Shown here: positions 1,093-23,261 of the stretch, in pieces
Layout of the letters: each line of letters opens with the position of its first letter
How positions within the stretch are numbered: position 1 is the stretch's first letter
Source: Paragordius varius
Taxonomy: Eukaryota; Animalia; Nematomorpha
DNA length: 64,000 bases
Direction of reading: 5' to 3'
NCBI GenBank assembly: GCA_964247055.1
Contig: OZ176053.1
Span: forward strand, 10,106,001-10,170,000
Notes under the pieces: model-generated
The model's database searches: none
What the model was told of the DNA's origin: nothing
Seen by the model: only the letters and a program-made list of their open reading frames with translations
Position numbers and translations under genes: made by a program

Positions 1093-4000
1093 TTACTCAA
1101 AGAATTTATCGATTCTTGGACGATTGTTAGAATTTGTTTTGGCTTGATAATTATTAGTGTCATGAGATCCTGGTGCATTACTGCAAAAATCCATATTGAT
1201 AGGGTTTGTAATATTGTTTGTGACATTTGATCGACCATTTAATACTCCATCCGAGGTTTGATCATTCTTTTTCCCGTGTCTTATATTTTTAGTATGATTC
1301 AAAATATTTTTGGTTGGTTTACAATCTGGGCCAATGCTCTTTTTAGCTGACATTTGTACTTGATTACTAACATTATTTTTATAATTGGCGGGTATATGGT
1401 GTGGACCCAGTTTCAAAGTTTCTTTTTTCAGTTCATCCAAAATATCACGTCTGAATATTGTATCTTTCTTATTAGCCAATACACGCAATGTATTCCGGTC
1501 AGCCCGTATCATACCAAATTTCATACCCGATTGTTGATTCATATGATGATTTGCGGGAACATATCGATGTGGTCCACTCTCAATATTATTATTATTGAAA
1601 TGGGATTTATTATCACCGCTGAAACCACCGTTTGGGAAATGGTTATCTAAAAAACCTATTTTATTTGCCATCCCATTTTTCCCAAAAGTTTGTTTCTTAT
1701 TACCAAACATCATTATCCCATTATTTGGGTATTTATAGCTATTTTGCTCCATATCATAATTCAAAGCTAAATGTTCGTAATCTTTGATGTCGGCACTGTT
1801 TGCATCAAATTCATTCAACAACCGTTCATTAAACTTTGGATTATTAATTTTTTCTGATAAGGCCAGGAAGCGTTTGGCAAACGCCGCATCTAATGTATTG
1901 GTAGTATACTTCCGTGTAGTCAACCTACCATCTGCCCGAATAGTCATATTTTTTGCCAAATTTTGGGCCACTGATCTTCGACCACGCAGTCCTACACCAA
2001 AATCTGATTCTCTTGTTCGGCCTCCTCCAAAACCCATAGGAGCATTTCCATCAAACTGTCTGCCACCACGTGAGTTATTCAGGTTAGTTGGGTAAGGGAG
2101 ATGCATAGGATTTTTAAAACTCGAGTTTATTCCTCCTCCGCCGTTTTCATTGATTGAAGCCTCATATTCGATTTCATCGTCCAATCCTTCCAATTTCTGT
2201 AATTCTCTTACCAGGGCAACAGCCTGTTCTGCCGTCAGTTGTGGAGGGTACGCGGTGCCATCCTTACCTTTCTTTAGACCTGACCTAAAGCGTGATAATC
2301 CCCGTCTTTTACTACAACATTTTAGGAATTTTAGTTCGGTCGTAGCCAATATTAGCTGAAATGTGCTAAATCTGTGTGCCAACATGGCAATGAATTGGGT
2401 AATGAGTAAAAACATAAAAACGACCAAAAACACCAAAGCAATCGGTTCTAGTTTTAGGTATTGTTTATTATCATGATTGACAAACAGCGATTCAAAGTGA
2501 TCTTCATAGCTCTCATCATCCAATACCTGTCCATCACCCCCGACTTTCGCCGAGTCGATTCGTTTGCCCCAGGGCCATTCAATAAATATTTTATCTTTAC
2601 GCAATTGCAACAAGAATATGATAAGGATAAAACATGCGTTCACCATATAAAACCCCAAAATAACCTATAGGTAATTACAAATTATTAAACTTTATTCCGT
2701 AGAGATTTCAAATCAGACTTTATCTTAATTTTGTGTTCATCATCCTCGTCAAGTGGGTATAAATAGGTTTCAATCAATTCTTTCCAAAATGTTTCTTCAT
2801 CTAACGTCACTTCCAGGAGTTCTCCTTTTTTCAAATTTTTATCATTGACCCAGAATAAATCTAATTTAACAAAATAAAAAACTATTGTTATATGTAGAGA
2901 ATTAATAGGTTTTTTAATAAAATTAAGTTTCTGGTTTTTTTTATTATATATATATTTATTGATAAATATAATATGTAATACCATCTAATTTGTTAACTCC
3001 AGGAGAAGATGCGATGATTGAATTATTCATGTCTATCCGGACTTGTTTGGCAGTCTTTTTACCACCATTTATTTTAACTGTTTTAGGTTCTGTACCAAAA
3101 TTATCGTGCGAGCCAGATAGCAGATTTGTGGTTTCATCCACTTGATCTGTTAAAAGGTATGGATCGATTCGGTGAGCTTTCCTGTGCTTTTTATTTCTGT
3201 GTCTGTGGGATCTGTGTTTTCTTACAACCGTTCGTTTATTGGGACTATTGACGCAACAAGTAAGTCTACACAATGTTCCACAATTAAAGGCAAATCCATC
3301 ATCTGGATGGATTGCCACATCTGAATTATCGGATGAATAGCAAGAATCGAGATCGGATTCACATTCTGATGAGGATGAAGAGGAGGCATATACAATTTTG
3401 CTTAATTTGCGCATTACTGCGGCCTGCTTTTCATGGGCAGCTAAATGCTCAAAGCCTTCATCTCGTTCTGCCTGCGCCTGAGCTTCAAGTAAATCTTCCA
3501 ACAAAGCCGGAGGGCTCGTAGGTTTGTTGGGTAAGTTGTCGTGATTTATGCCTTCATCTTCGTTTAATGGGTGATAGAAAGGGTCTCGCTTGTTGTGTAA
3601 CAAATCCTTTAAATAACCGTAATGAGGTAAATTTTGTTGTGCCATTAAATCTAATCTATCAGCCAAACTGTTTGATGAATTCTTTCGATAGCTTTTGTTT
3701 GTGACAAGCAATGGTATTCGGCTTTCATCCTGAATGCGATTTACCTTGTCCGACAGGTAACGCAATTTTAATGCTTTCCAACGTGATTTCGCCATGTCAT
3801 GCAATCTTTTTCTCCGTTTGTGCGCTCGCAGTCGATCTATTTTGTCGGCACCTGGAACTTCACGTGTTCCCCATTGTACTACGTGCAAGTTAGTCAGAGA
3901 ATAAATGATCAGCAATAAATACATGGCTGGTATAGCTAAAAAGTACAAGATTCCATATGCAATATTCCAAAATTCTTGGGGATGCAATAAGGCCGCTATA

Positions 4001-7000: not shown

Positions 7001-9752
7001 AAAATCATCTAGTTCGTCCTCTTCCTCCAAATGATACTGATCCAAATCGTCTTCGTCGTATATGCCATAAGAAATTTTCTCGTTTTCTGAAAACTATTTA
7101 GATTTCGTAATTAATTTACGAATTTAAAATAATTTATAAATTGGTTTTCACTCTACAAAACATGTTAAAATATATATATAAATTATCGAATAATTCTTAT
7201 AAAAAAATATTTTATATACCGCTCTTCGTAGTAGCTTGCGCTTTCTATCCCTTCTCCGGTTTAATGATAATGATTGTACTAATGCTATTGGGCAATACAT
7301 CGGACTTATAAAGAGCCTATGCGAATAAATATTTTATATGAAACATATTAAAATTTATCCAAAATTGTAAAAATAATACTTTTCAGTTTTAGCTAATCTC
7401 TCGACTTTAGGAAACCAAATGTGAAGAGTGATCCAAAACTGGGCTAATATCCAAATCATCCAAACTCCACAAATTTTATAAATAACATTTGTATCTGATT
7501 GACATTTCCAAAATACATTGTCTGGTATAAAACGGGACCTCATGGAACATGGATCCTTTTGTTCATATACACAGCTCAATCCTATGATTGATACTAATAC
7601 TGGAATCGATAGTGTAAGCGGTAAGGCAAAACTAAACCCTTGAATTTTAACTTTACAAGTGAATTTACTAACGTAGTAACAAATCAGACAGGCACAAACT
7701 TGAGTTAACACTAAAGACCATATCATAGATGGCGATATGTTTGAAGAAGCAAAAAGTGTAATGCCCAACAGATATTCGAGTTTATGAATACCAAGTTTGG
7801 CTGCTTCCTCTTTGATATCCGTGATTTGAAAAAAGGCTGGTCCTCTTGTTTTGAGTGCACCAATTAAAGATTTGAGATTCATTATACCCTGATCTAATTG
7901 CAATATATCGAGTGCCGATGTCAATAGCCAAACATTATTTTCTAACTTATTCATATCCGCACTAACCCTTTTGCGCAAGCTCGATATATACTCCGAAACA
8001 AAGGAGCTTGATACAGAAGGTGATCGGTTCAAATTTTCTACTAGTTTAGCATATTCGGCACCAAAAAATGTACGAATTTGATTTTCTTGATTTGATTCAT
8101 TTTTTAGAAATTCAACAAACATCGGGTTTACGCTAAAATAATAAACGTTTGAATGAGAATTTCCATTTAAATCCGATTGCAAAAAGAGTGGCCATAATAG
8201 TTTTCGATATGTTCGCAGAGTTTGACTAGGATTTTCGAAAATGGTTGAAACGTCAAAAAAATTGTAATTTAGTTTAAATAATGCAAAGCCACTTATGATA
8301 CAGACGCTAAGTATAATTTTCCATATACTAACAAAAATGTAAGTTTTCGCTCTGCTTCGTTTTAATAAGTCTTTGGTTATTACAAGGGTTTTAAACCCAA
8401 AAAGTTTAGCAGTATTAGTATCCACAAAATTTTCCCACCAAGTTAATGAGATAAGTATGGCAGATAATGGAATTACCCATATAATATTACTTGACAAGGT
8501 GTTTGAATAAGAGGTGCCGTCGTTTAAAATACCATTCCATACATTTTGGGGGGATGCTGTACGTGTCAACAGTGGCCACATAACAAGCCCCCCAACTAAT
8601 GCTATGAGTGACAATCCATCTAGGCCTACTTTTATCCAACGTGTCGCAATAACATTCGTTGTCGCACTATTGTCACGACTTAGCATTTGTAACAGAGCGG
8701 GGATAATGCAGAAACTATACATGATTATGAGGCCTTGGAGAGAATCTGTTTGTGGTAGTACGATCAAAACATACATACACACTCCAATGATATGCAAAGT
8801 TTCCATTCCAAACACGATGCCCAATGTTGTCCACGTAGGGGACGTGGTTGTGTGAAAAAGTGTTTGTCTCAAACTCCGGATCAGGACAAAGGTTGAGGGA
8901 AGCGTCATGCATAGCAAAATGGCCCAAAGCCAACGTAATCCATTAAGTCTAAAGGGATCCAGAGCAGATTGGTTGGACAATAACTGGATAGCTGATACAT
9001 CTATTCCATTTTCTTTGAATTCATTTGATGTTTCAAGCAACTCTACCATAGGTGTTCTTTCATATAGAGCATATATGGGTATATGGGTTTTGCTGCTCTG
9101 TAAGGATTTTGCAAACTTTCTTTTCAGCCGATTTGTTTTATCATTAGATGTTTTGGACAATAGATTTTTAGCCGTATTTGTGCGGTACAAACAAACTTCT
9201 TTGATTTGAAAATTTATTATTTGTGTGGAATCAATGGCATCCAAAGTATTGTTAGAGTGTGGTGTGGATCTTGCGACAGAAATTTTCTGATCAAAATTAT
9301 CATTGTTTAGATTTGCCGTAAGTAATAATAGAATGCCCATACTGGCCACTGAGGTGACCAGGACCAAAAGAAAGGTTACCAAGTAAACTACACATTTGGC
9401 TATTTGTTTGAAGGCTTCGACAAATCTATTCGTTTCATCAAAATCTTTGGTATCAACGGGAACGATACGAAATATATCCCATGGCGTAGTTGTGCTGTAT
9501 GAACTAGCTGATCTATATTATATAATTATATTGCATGAAATTAGGACAAAATCTGACAATTCATTTATGTTTAAACGCTATATTTTTCGAACCAGTTTTA
9601 TAAAACTTAACAGACACATATGATATAATATACCTTTGATTTAGCTTGTCCGGGGCAGATGAATTATAACTAGATTCATGATCTTTATCTGTTAGGCTGG
9701 GTCTTGTCGCAGGTCGACTGATCCCATTCTCTCCACGTAACGATGGTTCCAT
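1093..9752 (-). CDS. CHS: Chitin synthase (metazoan type, GT2 family), complete, 12 exons, 2307 aa
   Basis: Exons (minus): 9752-9634, 9512-7380, 7316-7220, 7093-6564, 6282-6203, 6138-6036, 5952-5799, 5722-5512, 4877-4677, 4535-2982, 2860-2691, 2664-1093; total 6924 nt = 2308 codons, all GT-AG, phases consistent. Catalytic motifs intact: CATMWHET, LDGDVD, YQKFEYAIGHW, CSPGCFSLFR, QGEDRW, QRRRW, WGTRE. Multi-TM N-terminal and C-terminal regions present. No myosin motor domain. Confidence 0.97.
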
Positions 9753-11989
9753 AATTTTGTATGATAATTTTACAACAATATATTAAAATGATGCAGAGCC
9801 ATCAATTATGATTTAAATTTAATGGTAAATGTTCCTTTTTTGGAATAACAGGATGATAAAAGCGAATATTTTAATTAGCACAACTTTGATTGCGTTTATT
9901 CCCAGCCGAATTGAAAGTTTTGAAATGACGTTTTTTTCACACTTCTACTATTCATTTTTTGGTAAATGTGTCTAAACAAAAATATTCGTTTTTAATTTTA
10001 TTTTAACGATTTGTAGAGATTAGGGGAAATATTTGAAATATTTAGAATATAGTTAATTTGGTATGAATAGCTTTAACACATAAACGTATTAATTCATCGT
10101 CAATATAATGTTGTGGAAAAGTTGTATAAATTCGTTCTTTTTTTTCGATTTTATTTCTTCATGTTATAAATTGATTCATATCTAAACTGCATAAATAACC
10201 GAGAATGCGGTTTTCCCTCAATGAATAAAATCAAGATAACTCAAAAGCACAGATATATCAGTTTTTATTTAAATTTATGAATAATAGATTTAAAATTGAA
10301 AAAAGTAAATTCTTTTTTTAAATAAATTTGTCACATTGATAATTTTATTATTTTTATATTTAATAAGAGAATGTATCGTATCCCGTTTATCCTATAATAC
10401 TTTTGATAAATATTATTAGGGTTATAAAACTTTATGTTCATATTTACCAAAAATTTGCTGGGGGCCAAATAAAATATAATTATGTTTTTATTGTTTAGGG
10501 GTGAGTACTTTTTTCCAAAAAAATATTTTTATTCTCCATAATTATGGCTAATTCAATTTTATTTAATTTAAAAAAGATAGATAAACCCATAGACATTTTC
10601 TACAGATTTAAGTTAAACTGGTGCTTAGCGCAACTCAAATTAGAGCAATATATTGTATTCTTGTATTCAACAAAAAAAATGGTATCCTACATTTCCCGAG
10701 TAAATAAATTTTGAGTTGACACACAGAAAGTGAGACTTTGTTCCCTTATTATAATTTTTATCTATCTCTATATGTGCTGAATACTTAACAATATATTCCC
10801 ATTCAACAAGTTAGCTTAATTGAAAATACAGTAAAAAATCATTGTTTGATAAAATCATTTTATTTAAACAGTGTGAAACGAAGTGTGAAATTGTCTTCCT
10901 TGTTTCAAATTTGAATTGAATTAAATTAATTTGGGAATTTTCTTGAAGTTTTTTCGTACAAATAAATTAGGTTTTTCTTCCGAATATATAATACAATCGA
11001 TTTTATTTTATGGTTTTATATTGAAAGAATTTGATAGTAGTTGTTTTTTAATTTTCAAAATATTTAATTTTAACACCTTACATCTCTCATAACGTTTTAA
11101 TATTAAGTAGGTAATTAAATATATTGAGTAAATCAAATTTAAGTATATAGAGCTAGCTAATGATTAAAATGCAATCAGCATCATGTATACCAAATTATAT
11201 AAACAATGCAAAAAGCCTTGTTTCCTTAAATTCATTAACACATGAAAAACTAGTTGATCTGGTTTGTGGGTTAATTTTTTAAACTATAAAACAATCATTC
11301 AAAATTTAAAATATTATATAAAAATAATTTGTCACAATTCTTAGAATTAAAGTGTCCTAAATCTAAAATCCTCTCATATATATAATGTGCGGCGCATCTT
11401 TAAACCGTTGTTCTGATTGATACAAGCATTAAAATACTAAATTGATAATTTTGCTATGAAACTACATAGATACTTATTAATAAAATTAATTTTGTACAAA
11501 CAAATGTAAAAGTTCAAATACAAAAGTAAAACGCTAAAATAAAAAAAGATCAATCGATAAGGTAATTTAAAAAACTTACTCTTTATACTGATATATATAT
11601 ATATATATATATACATATATAAAATTAAAATTATATTATATAAAAGTTATATGATATAAGTGTAACAGTAAAAGTTTTTTATTGCAAAAAATTAGATATG
11701 TAGGCAAACGTATTGATTTGTAAGTCGAGATAAAGAAAATTGTTGTAGTTGACATAAATAAATACATATAAAGGTCAAAGTCAAATTACATAGAATCAAC
11801 TCTATATACATTTTGATACAATAAAATTTTAGAATCGCTAGATTTTGTCTAATATAAATGAAAAAAATATAATATGAAAATATATATATATATATATATA
11901 TAATACAAAAATTAGTTTTTCAAGCAATTTTTCACCTTTTATGTAAATATAACAAATCAATAGTGGTTCTAGGTATTCTGAATACAAAG

Positions 11990-14080
11990 CCATAAATTTT
12001 AGCCCAACTGTAGTTTTTCATTAGCAACTTAGGCACCTTCTCTAAAATTCGTCATCGTGTAAAATACCATGCATTCGAAGCTAATTTAAACATGGTTTTA
12101 ATAGGCATTCTAGCTGTTTTACCCATAATAGCTAAAGTTACTTTTTTACTTAACTGCGATAGGGCTTCACCATCTAAAGAGTACGCCTTAATATACAAAT
12201 AACGTGACTTTAAAGCTAATATTTGCCCAAATTATGTGGCATGTGGTTGTGTAAATATTTGAATTTTTCTATTCAAAAATAAAAATTTTAGTTCTATACA
12301 AAATCTATACCTATGGCTTTGACCATGTTAATTTAGCTACCATATAGAAAATTTTGAGGCTAATTTAGGCCCTGGTTATTAGACCATATAAATTCAGTAA
12401 ATTTCCATTATAAAAGCAATATTTTAGCACTTTTGTCTGCTGAGCCACTGAGTAGGACTTTTGTCTCTGTTAAATACGCCACCATATCGAAAACGTGGCT
12501 TTAAAGTTAATGGCGCAAGGTAGATCATATGGACTCAGTTAGAGTTTTAAAGATTTCCCGTGACTGGCGAATAAAATGATACCTGCTTCTTTTCAGAACA
12601 AGTAGGAACACACCTTTTGCGCCATTATTTAACTACTGGGTAGGGCTACACTCTTTGTTAAATATGCAAACATTTAGAAATAACGTGTCTTTAAAGCATT
12701 GGGTAAACATATGCGACCCCATATCAATCATGGCTTAAGGTTAATAACGTATAAACAAGACACACCCTTTTTTAATTGCATAATAGGTATATAGCCAACT
12801 CTTTATAAATTCGCCACTACACAATAAAGTAACTTTGAAGCAACCCTTCGAATGTATGAGACCATGTAAATTAGATAATGGTTCTACGTTTTTCTTTACA
12901 TGGGTAAAAGTTCCGTTAAGCGCTTGCTTTCTTGGGTAGGGTCTTAACCTATGATAAAATGCCGTCATATTAACGTGATTATGAAGCAACTTTTCAGAAT
13001 TGTAATATGTTATTAATTCTATAGTGGCAGGTTTTTTTTCCATATAATTACACAATTGTAGTCAAGCGCTTTTTAAATTATCCAATGGTTAGGGTACCAC
13101 CTTTAGTTATTTAGGCCGCCATATAAAACAACCTGGTTTTGAGGCACCTTTTTGTAATATATGAAACCATATGTTTCCTAGGTTTTTTCCCTTATGAAGG
13201 TAATAATTATATTTGACGCCTTTTTTAAATTACCAAGAAGAGTTCTATCCTATATATGCGCCTAGAAAAATTAACGAGGATTTGAAGCAATTTTGTACTC
13301 TTAGAAAGTATGTATAGTCAGGTGCCTAATGACCGTGTCGACTAAGTTACAACTACGCGTGATAGGGCACAGCTGGATATTTTACAAAATGTAAAACGTT
13401 GACTTTAAGACAATTATAAAACGTGTAGAATGGATTTTCTTATTTATTTTAAGATTGTGCCGAATGGTCGGGCCACTTTCTTTCATTCACCGCTGCATCG
13501 CGCCCCCCGTAAAATGAAATTTTTCCAAACTTAAATACTTTTGGAGCAATTTATCATGAGATTGAAAATGTTAGTTTTAAGCAAGTACAAAGGCCAAAAT
13601 TCCCTGCGCCTTTTTTATATAAACCCTTTGATAGGGCTCTACCCTTTGTAAAATGCGTCACTTTATAAAATATTAGCTGTAAAGCAATTTTCGGAAAAAC
13701 TATAAAGTCATATGGCTTCAATCAGGCGCTTTATATAAGCGGCTGAGTGGGGTTTCACCTCTGTAAAATACTCCACCAATTGAGGTATTTATTCAAGTTA
13801 TACCACTATATAAATCGAAAATGATTTTAGGTAATACCATTAAAACAAAAATTGCGTTTTTTACATTTACCTCACCCTATGTCAATATGCCACCATATAA
13901 AAATAACCTTTAAATTAATTTATAAACCATGTTGTATCATAGTCATGGGATATCCTGTATAAAGGCAAGAACTTTAGTTTAATCCTTTTTAAAATTAATT
14001 CTTGCTAGGCTCCTACTCTATAAAATATGCGCAATTATTTAGAAACGTGGATTTGAAGCTCTGAAAGACCTATTAGCCCA
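11990..14080. repeat. Highly degenerate tandem array, period about 140 bp, roughly 14-15 units
   Basis: A recurring block TAGGGc..cacc.ct.tgtaaaatatgc.acc.tata.aaaa.cgtg.CTTTRAAGCWATTT, with the CTTTRAAGC-like anchor near 12078, 12212, 12355, 12500, 12690, 12835, 12980, 13138, 13280, 13405, 13541, 13680, 13910 and 14055 (positions by eye). GC is higher than the flanks and there is no coherent ORF. Confidence 0.6.
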
Positions 14081-14730
14081 TATTGAATCATGTATTATAA
14101 AATATGGTTTTAATTTTTTCCTGTTAGAAGGAAAAAAGTTGCCACCTAAATGCGCCAAATAAAATAACCAACTTTCCATCTCTGTGGGAATGGGGGCCAT
14201 GTGATACCAATCATGGTTTTGAGTATTTTCTTTGTAGTTTAACCCCAATCGTACCTACCTTTCTTATAAATAGCTGCTGTGTTTTTCTTTTATATGTTTA
14301 AATTGAAATATCTTTTATCTAGATTAGGGGTCAGCAACATTTGGAGGCGGGCTTTTTAAGGAAAATTCAGTGTGTTAAACATTTAAACGTAACTGGATGA
14401 TGCTTTTATGTTATTTTTGATCAATAAAAATGATATGGAATTTATTTTATGCTACTATTAAAAATGTTTTGAATGTATGATTCTTAAATATTTATACGTT
14501 GTAAAATAGTATGTGCCAATAGGCTTAGAAACTTAAATTTGCCATTTTTTTCAGTGAAAATTTTATTAACTAAGAATGCATTTTTTGATTATTCATTTTT
14601 TAGTGAAGGGTTTATTGTTCCGAATATGAAAGGAAGTTTTGGTTAATGTGGCATTTTGTTGGTTGATTTTCTTTAAAATGTTTTGTTGGTTCCTAAATGT
14701 GTAAATAATCAATTTTTGTTTTGTCTAAAC

Positions 14731-15052
14731 CAGGGGTGTCTAACACGGGACCCTTTTACAGCCGCAAATTTGAAAACCAATATTTTATGCATTAAAGAAA
14801 TTATCTTGGTTATATTACTAACTCTACTTTAACTGTAAAGATAACTAGATTTATTTTTTTATTTAACTTAGCTTTTTAATTTTTAAAATATAGACAAATC
14901 TGAATTTATCTTACCAAATTTTGCCAACTGTATGAACAAAAAGATAATTAAATCCTGATCGTAAATTCTTTAAACAGTCCCATATTGATATTAATTATTT
15001 TATGTCCGGTTATTTTTGAATGCAGCCCACTAAGCCATTTGTGTTGGCTTGG
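14731..15052. mobile_element. Possible degenerate hAT-type MITE relic
   Basis: Begins CAGGGGTGTCTAACAC (hAT-like terminus) and ends ...TGCAGCCCACTAAGCCATTTGTGTTGGCTTGG, a partial inverted match. No clean 8-bp TSD. Confidence 0.3.
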
Positions 15053-16189
15053 TACAAAAGATTTATGCTTATCATATTAATTTTTGTTTTTCCTTAGCGG
15101 TGACGCAAATAAGCACACTTTTTTATTCTTTATTGAGCATATTGCTTTATTGAAAATTCTAATAAAATAATGATCAATAAATCCTCTTTACATTAAATCA
15201 GGGGTATTCCTCAATTTTAATTTTTTTGGCATTTTTTTCCTTTTTTCTTCAATAAAATAAAACTTTTTACCAATTAAAATTAAATCAAAACTTTTAAACT
15301 TTAAAGTATACATCTAAATTAACCTGTTTGTGACGGGCCCGGCTTAGTAAGCTCTATATTTCTTAATTTTTTAATATCACCCAAATCTAGATAATTATTT
15401 ATATCATAATCTAAACAAATGTAATTAAAATTTGACTGGTTAATTAAGGACATCATATTAACTGTTATGAACGGATTAATGAATGGATTCATAACTAGTC
15501 GTCCTAATATTTTAAAATACCAGTGTTTTATAGTGAAATAAATTTTGAGGGATCCAGGTGGATTGTTATTTGGTTAAATATCGGCCCCTTAATTTACCGA
15601 TTACCTAACTTTTTGAAAGAATGTATAATAACAAAAACATAAACATGTAAACCAAAAAATTGTATGCTACATTTCTACGAATCTATAAATATATGTGAAA
15701 TATAAATAAAAAATGGAACAGTGTTAAAAATAAAAATTTAAATAAAATTTTGGAAACCAGGCTACGGTTAGAAAACGGTAGGGACCCGCTTTAAAATTTT
15801 CCTGCAAAACGGTTATGATTGGTCAGCATCCCTGATATAATCCTATATCCATTTTAAAAGCCTAAGTAGGTATTATCCTCATTTAAAATAATTATTACAG
15901 ATCTTAATTCGATTTTGATGTCACTTTTTTATTTAATTATTCTATTACTGTAATTTTTTAGTAAAAGTTCAGTACTAATTTATATTCCAAGGCTGAAATC
16001 GTCCCGAATTTCGCCATCTTTTTTTACTAAGCTAAATATATATATTTATAGAAATGATGCTATATTTATTATTGCAAAAAAACTAATACACATGAAATTA
16101 ACAGAATTTAGATATTATGTTTTAAAAAGAATGTTTGAAAGAATACAGCTATAATTGATTTAATGGTATAAATGAGTTATATGATACAG

Positions 16190-17636
16190 TTATACTGGCC
16201 ACACTACAACTTGGTTTATATTGCGACGATGGCGTCTCCTACGTCGATGCTTGGAAGAAGAACTGCTAGATCTGTGTCTGCGACGTCTTCGACGACCCCC
16301 TCCTCCATAATACCCATAACGCTTTTTACGCTTGCTAATGTAGCGTCTTTTATTATCAGCGTTTGACATATCAAACATTAACGTGGATGCAATAAGCCTT
16401 TTGTCATTGGGCAAATTTGATGATTCAGAATGAGATGAAAAATCGTCAGAATCCCTTTGATGTTGATCTTCTTCATTATTTTGTTGATTGCCGGTTGTAT
16501 CATCCTGATTGTCAGCTTTCTTGTCTGAGATCCTATCGTTTCCATAATTTTCGGCTCCTTGTCGTTTTAAATCATCTTCCATCAAATTGATATTAAGTGG
16601 TGAAAGACTTACATCATTATAACTTTTGTTTGAATTTATATTTACAGATTTTGCCGTCGCAGTTGACAAGGTAACGCCTTCAATGAGAGAGCGTTCCGAA
16701 AAAAACTGGTGATGAACCAAAAGAATTACACTGAGAAAGGCGTGAACCTAGAGTAAAAAAGTATAAAAGGTATTATTTAAAAATATATTTAATATCTCAT
16801 ATATTTATAACTTTGGATCTTATTAAATATATACTGTTCTTTAGGTTATGATTATGCCATTGGTCTAACTTGATTAATAATTAACCGCGAAATTATTGAG
16901 ATTAAATATGCGGGGAAAAATAATAATTATTATTAATATAATCAATGGTGCAGTTTAATTGTATAATATATATATTCAATAACAATATTTTGCTTAATTT
17001 TATTTTAAAGCCCATTTTATTTAACGAGAATAAATTTTTTAAATGAAGTTAAAGTTGAATTTTCAATCAAAAAAAATGTGCGGCCCAATTACAAATTCAC
17101 TAAAACAAATTACTCAAAAAAGTCTGATTATATTGAGGTATTTGACTAACCCAGGCCGTGGGTAATGAAACGGTGTTAAAAATCTTGACGAATAAACCTT
17201 TACAGTGTGCAATTAAACCTTCAACAAATAGTTTTATTCATCCAAGGGGGTTTTTCGGAATGAGCTGATAGCCCAAGATTGGGGATTAAACAAAAAATGG
17301 ACTTCATTTTTTTACATATTTAATGTGATCAAATTTATAGAGCGTTTATATTTTATTATTTAATGAGGTGTAGACCCCAAATATTTTGGATACCAATAAT
17401 CGAATCTATATAATATTGGTTGATGATGATGCGACACACAATTACAATTGGTTAAACATTGACATCTATTTATCATAAAGGCTTGTATTTAAGTTTTTAT
17501 TTAATAAACTCGACGGATATCTTGATATAAAAAAAATCGAAAAATAAGCTTTTCAATGTGAATATCCAAAAAAAATTATATATAATGTATTATATACCTT
17601 AATTTTACGATTCCATTCTCTGAAACACCCAGCCAT
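16190..17636 (-). CDS. Orphan secreted-precursor-like protein, 198 aa: putative signal peptide, acidic pro-region, KR/RKKR sites, Arg/Ser/His-rich C-terminal peptide
   Basis: Exon 1 17636-17598 (ATG...AAG|GTATAT, MAGCFREWNRKIK, phase 0). Exon 2 16747-16190 after a strong acceptor (ttttttactctag), open for 185 codons to TAA. The joined N-terminus MAGCFREWNRKIKVHAFLSVILLVHHQFFSERSLIEG-VT has a basic then hydrophobic profile. Exon 2 is well supported; exon 1 is inferred from phase and splice signals. Confidence 0.7.
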
Positions 17637-17671
17637 TTAGCAAGAACAAAAATATTAATTATATTTTATAT

Positions 17672-17675
<4 letters not shown>

Positions 17676-17711
<36 letters not shown>
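17676..17711. repeat. (TA)n microsatellite about 40 bp upstream of the inferred start of the orphan precursor gene
   Basis: Direct reading of the sequence. Confidence 0.9.
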
Positions 17712-17712
<1 letters not shown>

Positions 17713-18899
17713 TATATAAAGCGCATGTCATCAATCATTTTAAGGTTATCTTAAAAATATATATTTTATTCTACCACGTTAAAATTATAGATTGTGTGCA
17801 TTCCATGAAATAGCATATTTATTACCCATTTTGTTTGTAACAATATTCAAATATGTGGTTATTTATCTCTTAAAGATAGATGCGTCTGCTATTTTATTTT
17901 TAACTCAATTAGTCTATAACCGAAAAATATGTATTTTTTTACATTATGAGGTATCTTTCTTAATTGATATAGTTTTAACGCATCTCATTAATTAAACTGT
18001 ATGGGTAAGTAACGATAAAGGGTTGTTAAGAATTAAGTGGTATAATTTATCGCGGATATTAGAAAATTTAATATAATTACTAAAATCATTTTAAAATTTT
18101 TGCCATAGGCATGATTGTAATATTTTGTAATCTATAAACAAACGCATTCTTTGTTTATCATAAAAATTAAAAATAATAGAAAATATTCAAAGCTCATTCA
18201 AACATTTAAAAACAAATTACAATTAGCTCATTACTCAACATAGTATGTATATGAATAACTGTTAACTAAATATCCTACAAGCTATCAAAGTTAAAATTAT
18301 TTAATAATGTGGTTTTAAGTAAAATGTAAGGATGCAAATTTAAAAAATATTTTTTATTAATTTTTCTGCACAAATCATGATTCATTTGGGGAAGTTGCAT
18401 AGATTAATAAAGATATTATATGGACCAAATTAAACATTTTATAATATAAATGCCTAAAAAATTAACATCAAATAACCTGAAAACGTATTTAACAATAGTG
18501 TGAATTGGCAGCAAAATTTGCTTATTTTAATTATTTCTTCTGTCGTTAATAAAAAGTTATAGTTTAATAAATATAACTGATAAAAACTAACACTATATTT
18601 ATCCTAATAATGTCTACGAGAACGAATATTTTATGTAAAATATAATTTCAATTATCGTAAAATTTTATAAATTAAACTATATCCAAAATTTTCGATACAT
18701 GGTAGCATCTTTTTCAATGGATTAACTAAAACAGAATAATAATAAGATATAATTATAACAAAATTTCAAAAAAATATAATTATAAATTATGATATAACAA
18801 AAAAAATGCAAAGTGTGATGTCCATATAGTTTCTCCTTGTTTTTTCTTGGAGTGGTAAATATTTTAAAATAATCTGTTCCTTTTAAGAAACCTTTAGTG

Positions 18900-19060
18900 A
18901 CCTTGTTAAGTTCTTTTCTCTCTTCTCATCTGTTGCACAATAGAAAAGTTTCGGCCGTCTACGACCATTGCAAGAATACAGGCCACACCTTCGCCCCAGC
19001 ATCCATTGTAGCACAAGCCGACAAATTATCCGACCTATTATTTATGACAGTAAATTATGG
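18900..19060 (+). mobile_element. Possible Penelope-like GIY-YIG endonuclease remnant
   Basis: GC-enriched island translating ...SSHLLHNRKVSAVYDHCKNTGHTFAPASIVAQADKLSDLLF. This resembles the SA(V/I)xxHxxxTGH motif recalled from the C-terminal part of PLE endonucleases. No RT nearby. Confidence 0.3.
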
Positions 19061-20582
19061 CTATTAATTTTGAATCAGCTAGTTGTTTTAAAATGATATA
19101 AATAATGAATTCGAGACGTTGAATCTATTAAAAAAAAAAGATTAAGCCTTTTAATATTTGGTTTTAATTTTTAATAATCATATTTCATCACATTATTTTA
19201 TTATGACTTAATTAGCTTTTTATTTGCAGTCGATTATATAACACTTGACCTTTTAGGGGTAGTATTTACCCAATGACCATAATTTAAATTCTTATAAAAT
19301 ATTTTAGGCATTGGGCCAAATTAAGAGATATGCTATCTTTTAGTCTATTAGGATCATGATACAAAAATTTTATATATAAAAAATTGAAATTGTAAAAAAT
19401 CCTCATCTCAAACTTTTGCGCCGCCATTTTTTTATCGTAAATTAAACACGGAAACCACTGGTTGAATAATATAAATAACTTATGGAAATTTGAATTGCAA
19501 TATAACAAAAATCACAAAAATATATCAGAAATTACATATAAAAGCAAAACATTGAAAAATTTAATCTGTAAATGTGGGCTCCGAAAGTCCCAAATCTATA
19601 AAATAAGCTAGTTCTTCTTAAATAAATCCCAAAATGCCTGGATTGCGCTATAAAAATTCCGAATATGTTCTAAATATTTAACAAAACATATTTTTCAAAA
19701 AATGCATACCTTTTTCAATTTAATTTTTAGCATTTTTTGAAGCGTACTTATCCTAAAATTTTGCTAAAAATTAAATTTTGATATAAGTATGCAAATTTTA
19801 AAATAATTTTTGCTAAAAACAAAGCATATATTTAAAATTTTTATCGTGCAATATGGACATTGTGTTTAACGAAAAATTTGCTTATTTTTTTAAAAAATAT
19901 TGATTTGCTTTTTAATGTTTACATATATTTTTCTACATTTTTTGGCATGAAAAATTTAGCTTTCACCAAAAAAATTTTGACACATTGTGCGCAAATATTG
20001 CTATATTCTCATATGGAGCAGTTACCACAAAAGTGTAAATACTTTATTTAAAAGTTAAAACAAAAAGCACCATGATAATCCTGTATTTTCTTCTTAGAAT
20101 ATATATACATATTATCAGGTTATTATTATACCCGCTATTATAATGCATTGTTTATTGGAGAAAAAAATTTGAGTTCCAAATTGAGATAGCTGCTAAATAC
20201 GATTGAAAGATTTTTTTACGATATGTATAACCTGGTAAAATAAAACACGAAGGCTTGCTAAAAATATAAATTATAAATCATAATATAGTTTTATTTGTAT
20301 TTTGTATCAGCGAAAAATATCAGAAAAAAGCGATGAAAAAGTTCATGAGGATTTTATACAATTTCAAAAAAATGGAGCATGCGAAAAGTGCATATTTTAA
20401 ATTTGGATATACGTTAAAACTTTTTAAGATATTTATGTTTTAAATAGCCTTGTTTTAAAATATGAACGTAATTGTTTATAATTATTAGCATACGCTCGGA
20501 TTTTATATACCCAGAAATATTTATAAAAGGTTTAGATGTAAGAAATGATAAGAATGTGTTACGCTACTAACTCATATTTTGA

Positions 20583-21346: not shown

Positions 21347-23261
<1,915 letters not shown>

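Follow-up and report, generated by a model that had tools for sequence, protein, structure and literature searches.

The 64,000-nucleotide (nt) stretch of DNA analyzed here, hereafter the window, probably contains a real orphan gene that is small, has two exons, and is restricted to its lineage. The window covers positions 10,106,001 to 10,170,000 of contig OZ176053.1 from the nematomorph Paragordius varius (assembly GCA_964247055.1), and positions below are counted from its first letter. The main exon of the gene, called the target gene here, lies on the minus strand, and all of its 185 codons are open (Table 1). The predicted product begins with a hydrophobic head, continues through an acidic middle, and ends in a basic tail with runs of arginine and serine. 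The polyarginine frame is the selected reading of this tail, and secretion of the product is plausible. We tentatively favor, at somewhat less than an even chance, a secreted precursor that is cleaved at an RKKR site and frees a polycation binding to polyanionic surfaces.

Codon statistics make it very probable that the 185-codon frame is a genuine protein-coding exon. A first-order Markov model predicts 0.01 frames of at least 185 codons by chance per 64-kb window. The chance expectation genome-wide is roughly 17, so the length of the frame by itself is not decisive. The plain codon log-odds of the frame is +63.7 bits, but composition accounts for part of this, as the good scores of further short open frames in the same GC-rich stretch show. 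Therefore a frame-discrimination score was used that is blind to stop codons and was trained on the known exons of the window. The 185-codon frame scored +34.4 bits, while the other two frames scored -21.0 and -35.8. Pieces of known exons of equal length had a median of 27.8 bits, with the correct frame chosen in 240 of 240 cases, and the 99th percentile of unmasked sequence, which served as the null, was 21.9 bits. The coding signal is concentrated at residues about 21-130. The GC content at the first, second, and third codon positions is 0.47, 0.40, and 0.31, compared to 0.42, 0.36, and 0.30 in known exons. Two poly(A)-signal-like hexamers follow the stop codon, but they are weak evidence since the local DNA is only 21-26% GC.

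Synonymous resampling identifies the frame that is under selection in the tail. The tail contains runs of six arginines (R6), six serines (S6), and five arginines (R5). The codons of R6 are CGT CGA AGA CGT CGC AGA, those of S6 are TCT AGC AGT TCT TCT TCC and thus mix the TCN and AGY families, and in R5 all five codons are different. The mixed codon families in S6 and the five different codons in R5 argue that neither run is a slippage product. The two copies of the duplication that produced R6 differ by one synonymous change. The original prediction, made from the sequence alone, held that none of the runs came from slippage; this stands for S6 and R5, while R6 goes back to a 9-nt tandem duplication. 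The periodicity score of the tail is higher in the +1 frame than in frame 0. Two other long open reading frames (ORFs) of the genome have the same +1 bias where they are rich in Arg, and it arises because Arg, Gly, and AGY-type Ser codons yield codons starting with G when read in the +1 frame. When the +1 peptide was held fixed and its codons were resampled, frame 0 was open in 12% of the trials and encoded at least 14 Arg in 90 of 100,000. With the frame-0 peptide fixed, the +1 frame was open in 100% of the trials. This asymmetry shows that frame 0 is selected and that the openness of the +1 frame is an automatic by-product, and the protein-level selection that had been predicted for the tail is therefore upheld. 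A +1-frame reading of the tail, as an ORF with an acidic/hydrophobic end at 16219-16377 of the minus strand, was rejected by the resampling; this ORF and another overlapping one at 16172-16366 of the plus strand are by-products. The Arg reading of the tail hinges on the assembled length of a run of five G at 16296-16300.

The predicted protein consists of regions with distinct compositions. The best 9-mer of the head has a mean Kyte-Doolittle hydropathy of 3.12, but the best 19-mer reaches only 1.09, so the head is too weak to be a membrane anchor. A single-sequence AlphaFold2 model of the exon-2 product has a single confident element, a helix at residues 2-24, where the mean predicted local distance difference test score (pLDDT) of the first ten residues is 87. 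The rest of the model is disordered, and the overall mean pLDDT is 54.5. The first in-frame Met is residue 56, with its ATG at 16582-16580. The acidic part that starts there has the strongest coding signal of the exon (+35.1 bits), and the RKKR motif is located exactly where the acidic part meets the basic part. Basic residues are grouped in dibasic and polybasic sites; for residues 25-143 a permutation test gave p = 5e-5, and leaving out the KRRYISKRKKR block gave p = 0.036. The 42-residue tail has 14 Arg, one Lys, three His, and no Asp or Glu. Its core, residues 152-175, is 14/24 Arg, and the tail as a whole is 33% Arg. The net charge is -11 in the acidic part, +23 in the C-terminal basic part, and +12 in the exon-2 product overall. 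The translation thus confirms what the original prediction had stated about the composition of the tail, the polybasic sites, and the codons of the runs. The hydrophobic N-terminal segment, the acidic pro-region with dibasic sites, and, at the level of a motif, the furin-type RxKR site were also found as described.

Table 1. Features of the target gene and its predicted product, in window positions
Feature	Positions	Strand	Details
Candidate exon 1	17598..17636	-	13 codons; ATG at 17636; donor AAG/GTATAT; nearest of several compatible ATG mini-exons
Putative intron	16748..17597	-	850 nt with candidate exon 1; strong acceptor, candidate donor
Main coding exon	16193..16747	-	185 codons; stop TAA at 16190-16192; single copy in genome
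Residues 1-24, hydrophobic head	16676..16747	-	hydrophobic region (h-region) AFLSVILLV of signal-peptide type, His on both sides
Residues 25-55, Ser/Thr/Asn-rich spacer	16583..16675	-	frame 0 coding-like, +7 to +8.6 bits per 25 codons
Residues 56-132, acidic disordered part	16352..16582	-	19 Asp/Glu, 8 Lys/Arg, net -11; pairs KR, KK, KR
Residues 133-143, polybasic junction KRRYISKRKKR	16319..16351	-	+8; RKKR convertase-type site; resembles a bipartite nuclear localization signal; both by motif
Residues 144-185, tail	16193..16318	-	Gly/Tyr start; R6, S6, and R5 runs with His; hydrophobic end; net +15
9-nt tandem duplication (CGTCGAAGA / CGTCGCAGA) producing R6	16276..16294	-	Tandem Repeats Finder: period 9, 2.1 copies, 90% match
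Poly(A)-signal-like hexamers	16065..16164	-	ATTAAA from 16164 and AATAAA from 16070, 26 and 120 nt past the stop; pattern scan

The sequence ahead of Met56 suggests that translation most likely starts in a short ATG exon upstream of 16748, and translation of the hydrophobic head is probable. None of the 55 codons that precede Met56 is a stop, which has a probability of 0.023 in unmasked window sequence. They have a codon log-odds of +10.9 bits and score +8.0 in the stop-blind test, while the other frames score about -27 and -9. The open frame begins exactly at a strong acceptor, tttatacttttttactctag followed by G at 16748, with 12 of 15 pyrimidines ahead of the AG. At this boundary the GC content steps from 0.17 to 0.43. 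Together, the open and coding-like codons, the acceptor, and the GC step point to translation entering from a short upstream ATG exon. Besides the nearest candidate, which has a (TA)27 tract directly upstream at 17667-17718, two more ATG mini-exons, 19006-18989 and 19733-19710, are compatible with this acceptor and equal by motif. With every candidate exon 1, AFLSVILLV lies within about 25 residues of the N-terminus. The 198-amino-acid spliced product of the original prediction is a model. Its exon 2 with 185 open codons is confirmed, while the proposed exon 1 and its 850-nt intron are plausible, this exon being one of at least three fitting mini-exons.

The neighborhood of the gene is consistent with a small gene. 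A neighboring GTPase gene has an intron of about 770 nt, so an intron of the size of the putative one is normal here. This gene is of the Rho/Rac/Cdc42 type, with plus-strand exons at 21571-21771 and 22539-22763, and is arranged head-to-head with the target gene. It bounds the first exon of the target gene, and candidates beyond about 20.5 kb are therefore unlikely. No further coding-like minus-strand exon was found between 16748 and the GTPase gene at 21571, which shows that the target gene is small. No micro-intron with GT..AG ends and a length of 18-40 nt joins an upstream ATG to the frame. An in-frame 24-nt intron candidate at 16729-16706 and GC-rich candidates within the tail are unsupported and occur at the frequency expected by chance. 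A template for a micro-intron is found in the chitin synthase gene of the window, where a 26-nt GT..AG segment (2665-2690, minus strand; GTTTAA...CCTATAG) is 19% GC. Rfam had no match in window positions 14500-19500.

Judged by its sequence, the target gene is a single-copy orphan that belongs to no described family and is not a transposon. The best Pfam match was to IMUP (E = 0.034; 15.3 bits versus a cut-off of 27), a sub-threshold match of low complexity, and no transposon domain was found. A word-indexed search of 5.8 billion clustered proteins gave nothing at E <= 0.01. Searching 1.84 billion representatives with phmmer returned only one protein (P0001, E = 4.8e-4), which is a chance match of acidic and basic runs. 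The best match in the PDB had an E value of 0.34, and the ESM Atlas contained no usable match. Whether the query was the full exon or just the tail, a six-frame search of the whole 110.6-Mb assembly found only the locus itself. A weak match within the same genome turned out to be an unrelated basic helix-loop-helix gene. An exact look-up of the product starting at Met56 found no record. For synteny via chitin synthase, the N-terminal exon of that gene had no matches, and its catalytic exon matched only arthropod and nematode proteins and short contigs. The searches used exon 2 alone and not the joined product of exons 1 and 2. The orphan status claimed in the original prediction is borne out by these searches for homologues, paralogues, known families, and transposons, none of which gave a genuine match.

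The order of the regions suggests a possible route to a secreted polycation. The short upstream ATG exon would give the first residues, and the signal-peptide-type helix at the start of the main exon would send the chain into the endoplasmic reticulum (ER). In transit the acidic middle would partly mask the polybasic C-terminal third. A furin/kexin-type convertase would cleave at RKKR, and perhaps at other dibasic sites too. The released Gly/Tyr-Arg/Ser/His polycation would then act outside the cell on polyanionic surfaces, most likely in antimicrobial defense, with a role in a matrix or as an adhesive also possible. What we infer in this reading is the first exon, the entry into the ER, the cleavages, and the function outside the cell. 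Proprotein convertase P-domains are found at two loci in the genome. Copper type II monooxygenase C-domains are found at two or three loci, including C4:4195718-4196653 on the minus strand and C4:12375554-12376655 on the plus strand.

A number of results weigh against a secreted precursor. Exon 1 is not unique, since several candidates fit. The codon test on the short h-region stretch is neutral, and on inspection by eye the few residues next to the h-region showed no canonical signal peptidase site with small residues at -3/-1. The exon-2 product has no cysteines and no amphipathic structure. The original prediction assumed that the acidic pro-piece neutralizes the cation, but a charge of -11 fails to neutralize one of +23. 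It also assumed that an intact +15 peptide is released, which is doubtful. The tail contains several RRRR-type convertase sites, so that fragmentation, or else resistance to or inhibition of the enzyme, is possible. Polybasic peptides are known to inhibit furin (PMC4482483). The target has no relative in any database searched. No transcripts are among the contigs of sequencing runs X1, X3, X4, and X5 that were aligned to the locus, and the runs that contain the locus consist of DNA contigs. Five small runs labeled as the same species, which are guessed to be RNA, contain no sequence words of the locus.

The layout of the protein may also be that of a sperm nuclear basic protein precursor of the protamine type. 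It would be produced in spermatids and enter the nucleus by means of KRRYISKRKKR or poly-Arg. The Arg/Ser/His tail would condense DNA, phosphorylation of the Ser run would serve as a switch, and the acidic N-terminal part would be cut off in spermiogenesis. Insect protamine precursors likewise have a less-charged disordered N-terminal part with Arg clusters behind it, and the fast evolution of protamine-type proteins would account for the missing homologues. Arg clusters that are split by a Ser run and mixed with His recall fish protamines and mammalian P2. However, an open and coding-like stretch of 55 codons before Met56 and a hydrophobic helix at its start are unexpected in a nuclear protein. 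An Arg content of 33% in the tail is low for a true protamine, and a hydrophobic decapeptide stands at its end. Two more typical protamine candidates are found on the same chromosome, as intronless genes with a leader/basic/SSSEE/basic arrangement that are unrelated to the target. For these reasons a protamine precursor seems unlikely, though this reading, which the original prediction had named as its own refuting alternative, is the main rival. A literature search on hairworm sperm proteins found nothing. These two genes are the neighboring intronless ORFs at about C4 5327248-5329795 (L006 1249-1692, minus strand, 147 amino acids, and 3044-3796, minus strand, 250 amino acids). Good candidates for sperm nuclear basic or SR-like proteins, they each combine a leader that is not basic with Arg/Ser/Lys-rich blocks and an SSSEE island.

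The remaining explanations concern the basic sites and the origin of the frame. The significant clustering of dibasic and polybasic sites and the Gly immediately ahead of R6 would fit a neuropeptide-like secreted precursor. Its products would be the short pieces between basic sites, such as an amidated Gly-extended YGYYGGG and a cyclized peptide starting with Gln, and carboxypeptidase would trim the Arg runs, which would serve only as oversized processing sites. The genome does have convertase and copper monooxygenase family genes, but the amidating enzyme is only a candidate, as the PHM-type N-domain (PF01082) was found only at E = 0.044 at one C-domain locus. None of the pieces resembles a known peptide family, there are no repeated peptide copies, and the codon evidence for selection on the Arg and Ser runs exceeds what spacers would need, which makes a neuropeptide precursor rather improbable. 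Alternatively, the locus may be non-functional. The frame would be a chance or decaying one, or a young de novo gene with no settled role, and its Arg-rich end would come from the local GC-rich, low-complexity DNA. Homologues, paralogues, and RNA were all not found in the searches made, about 17 frames of this length are expected genome-wide, the locus lies within a repeat-rich interval, and the head and the tail on their own are neutral or atypical in the codon test. Yet the coding signal at residues 21-130 is above the 99th percentile of the null, the resampling test favors the Arg frame, the mixed codon families in the homopolymer runs speak against slippage or chance, and the frame starts exactly at a strong acceptor. 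A non-functional frame is thus an unlikely explanation of the locus.

The favored secreted precursor can be extended to a broader proposal, which we consider speculative and improbable as a whole. The gene would be one of a wider lineage-specific set of secreted Arg-block genes encoding "extracellular protamines" of horsehair worms. These would be orphan precursors in which an acidic propiece restrains polyArg/Ser tails. The tails would be cell-penetrating, nucleic-acid-binding, convertase-blocking, or microbicidal, and they would act at the surface of the worm or in the insect host.

Sequencing runs reveal very high diversity around the target gene. Two haplotypes are present in the source run, X1. 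Across 393 nt in window 16769-17317, 35 substitutions and 19 gap positions set the second haplotype apart. Its divergence in the putative intron is about 9%, and a 156-nt difference lies there at 16769-16924. The haplotype differences listed are a subset with none in the ORF, and they are not counted as evidence of constraint. Most contigs of a second individual (X4/X5) diverge by 5-10% or more. Run X3, which is labeled as a different organism, has low-depth (3-5x) contigs identical to window 12550-17317. This suggests that DNA of the same worm is present in the sample of another organism, through a host relationship, contamination, or mislabeling.

Other parts of the window contain repeats and a probable additional exon. 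The contig depth at 14835-15212 is 3-5x that of the flanks in X1, X4, and X5, and there are many breaks at 15011-15047 with varied loose ends. A multi-copy transposon or miniature inverted-repeat transposable element probably ends in this segment. The whole interval 12000-15300 looks repeat-derived. A coding-like open stretch of 73 codons (+11 bits) is found at 9564-9782 on the minus strand, just upstream of the N-terminal chitin synthase ORF at 7355-9382, and it is probably a further 5' exon of the chitin synthase gene.

The target gene would be of interest under more than one reading. If it encodes a secreted precursor, Nematomorpha, for which hardly any molecular data exist, would have a precursor of a defense or effector peptide, and its chemistry is unusual in that homopolymeric Arg and Ser runs lie behind an acidic propiece. 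If it encodes a protamine precursor, it would be, as far as could be found, the first candidate sperm chromatin protein for Nematomorpha. Either way, small, spliced, low-complexity genes escape ORF-level annotation in this genome.

Cationic host-defense precursors with an anionic propiece, for example the alpha-defensin-type prepropeptides, form a design class. The target has the same order of parts, with a hydrophobic head, an acidic propiece, an RKKR boundary, and a cationic C-terminal part. Unlike the alpha-defensin-type precursors, it has no cysteines or fold, its charges are unbalanced (-11 versus +23), and its homopolymeric Arg and Ser runs are not amphipathic. There is no sequence relation between the two, and the signal peptide of the target is putative.

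In C. elegans, an ecdysozoan worm, the NLP-29 and caenacin peptides are secreted, small, basic, and rich in Gly and aromatic residues. These families are defined by repeated YGGYG or YGGWG motifs and have not been found outside nematodes (PMC6780910). The target shares with them one Gly/Tyr octapeptide after a basic site. However, the two motifs are absent from the exon-2 product, so the likeness to these peptides that had been proposed does not hold. In addition, there is a single short Gly/Tyr stretch and no homology. Their precursors carry an N-terminal signal peptide, are under about 100 amino acids, and are encoded in tandem gene clusters, whereas the target has a putative signal-type head, about 198 amino acids as modeled, and no neighboring paralogue.

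We know of no natural secreted animal precursor of the polyarginine kind. Polyarginine peptides that penetrate cells or inhibit convertases (PMC4482483) share runs of 5-6 Arg with the target, where the runs are part of a +15 peptide. This chemistry lets such peptides enter cells and inhibit furin in vitro; those peptides are synthetic or viral.

Insect protamines are made from precursors of 89-177 amino acids, and the less-charged N-terminal part is cut off (PMC12216123). For example, the precursors in Tribolium have 89 and 177 amino acids, and in Apis P2 residues 1-69 form a disordered region of lower charge (PMC12216123). Like the protamine precursors of insects, squid, and mammals, the target is of similar size and has a less-charged disordered N-terminal part and C-terminal Arg clusters with Ser or His. 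Protamine precursors are processed by cleavage, and their sequences evolve fast and are orphan-like. The target differs from them in that its main exon opens with a predicted hydrophobic helix, its middle is markedly acidic, its tail is only 33% Arg and has a hydrophobic end, and its gene is putatively spliced. Overall, the target belongs to no described family, and it is designed like an anionic-propiece cationic precursor or a protamine precursor.

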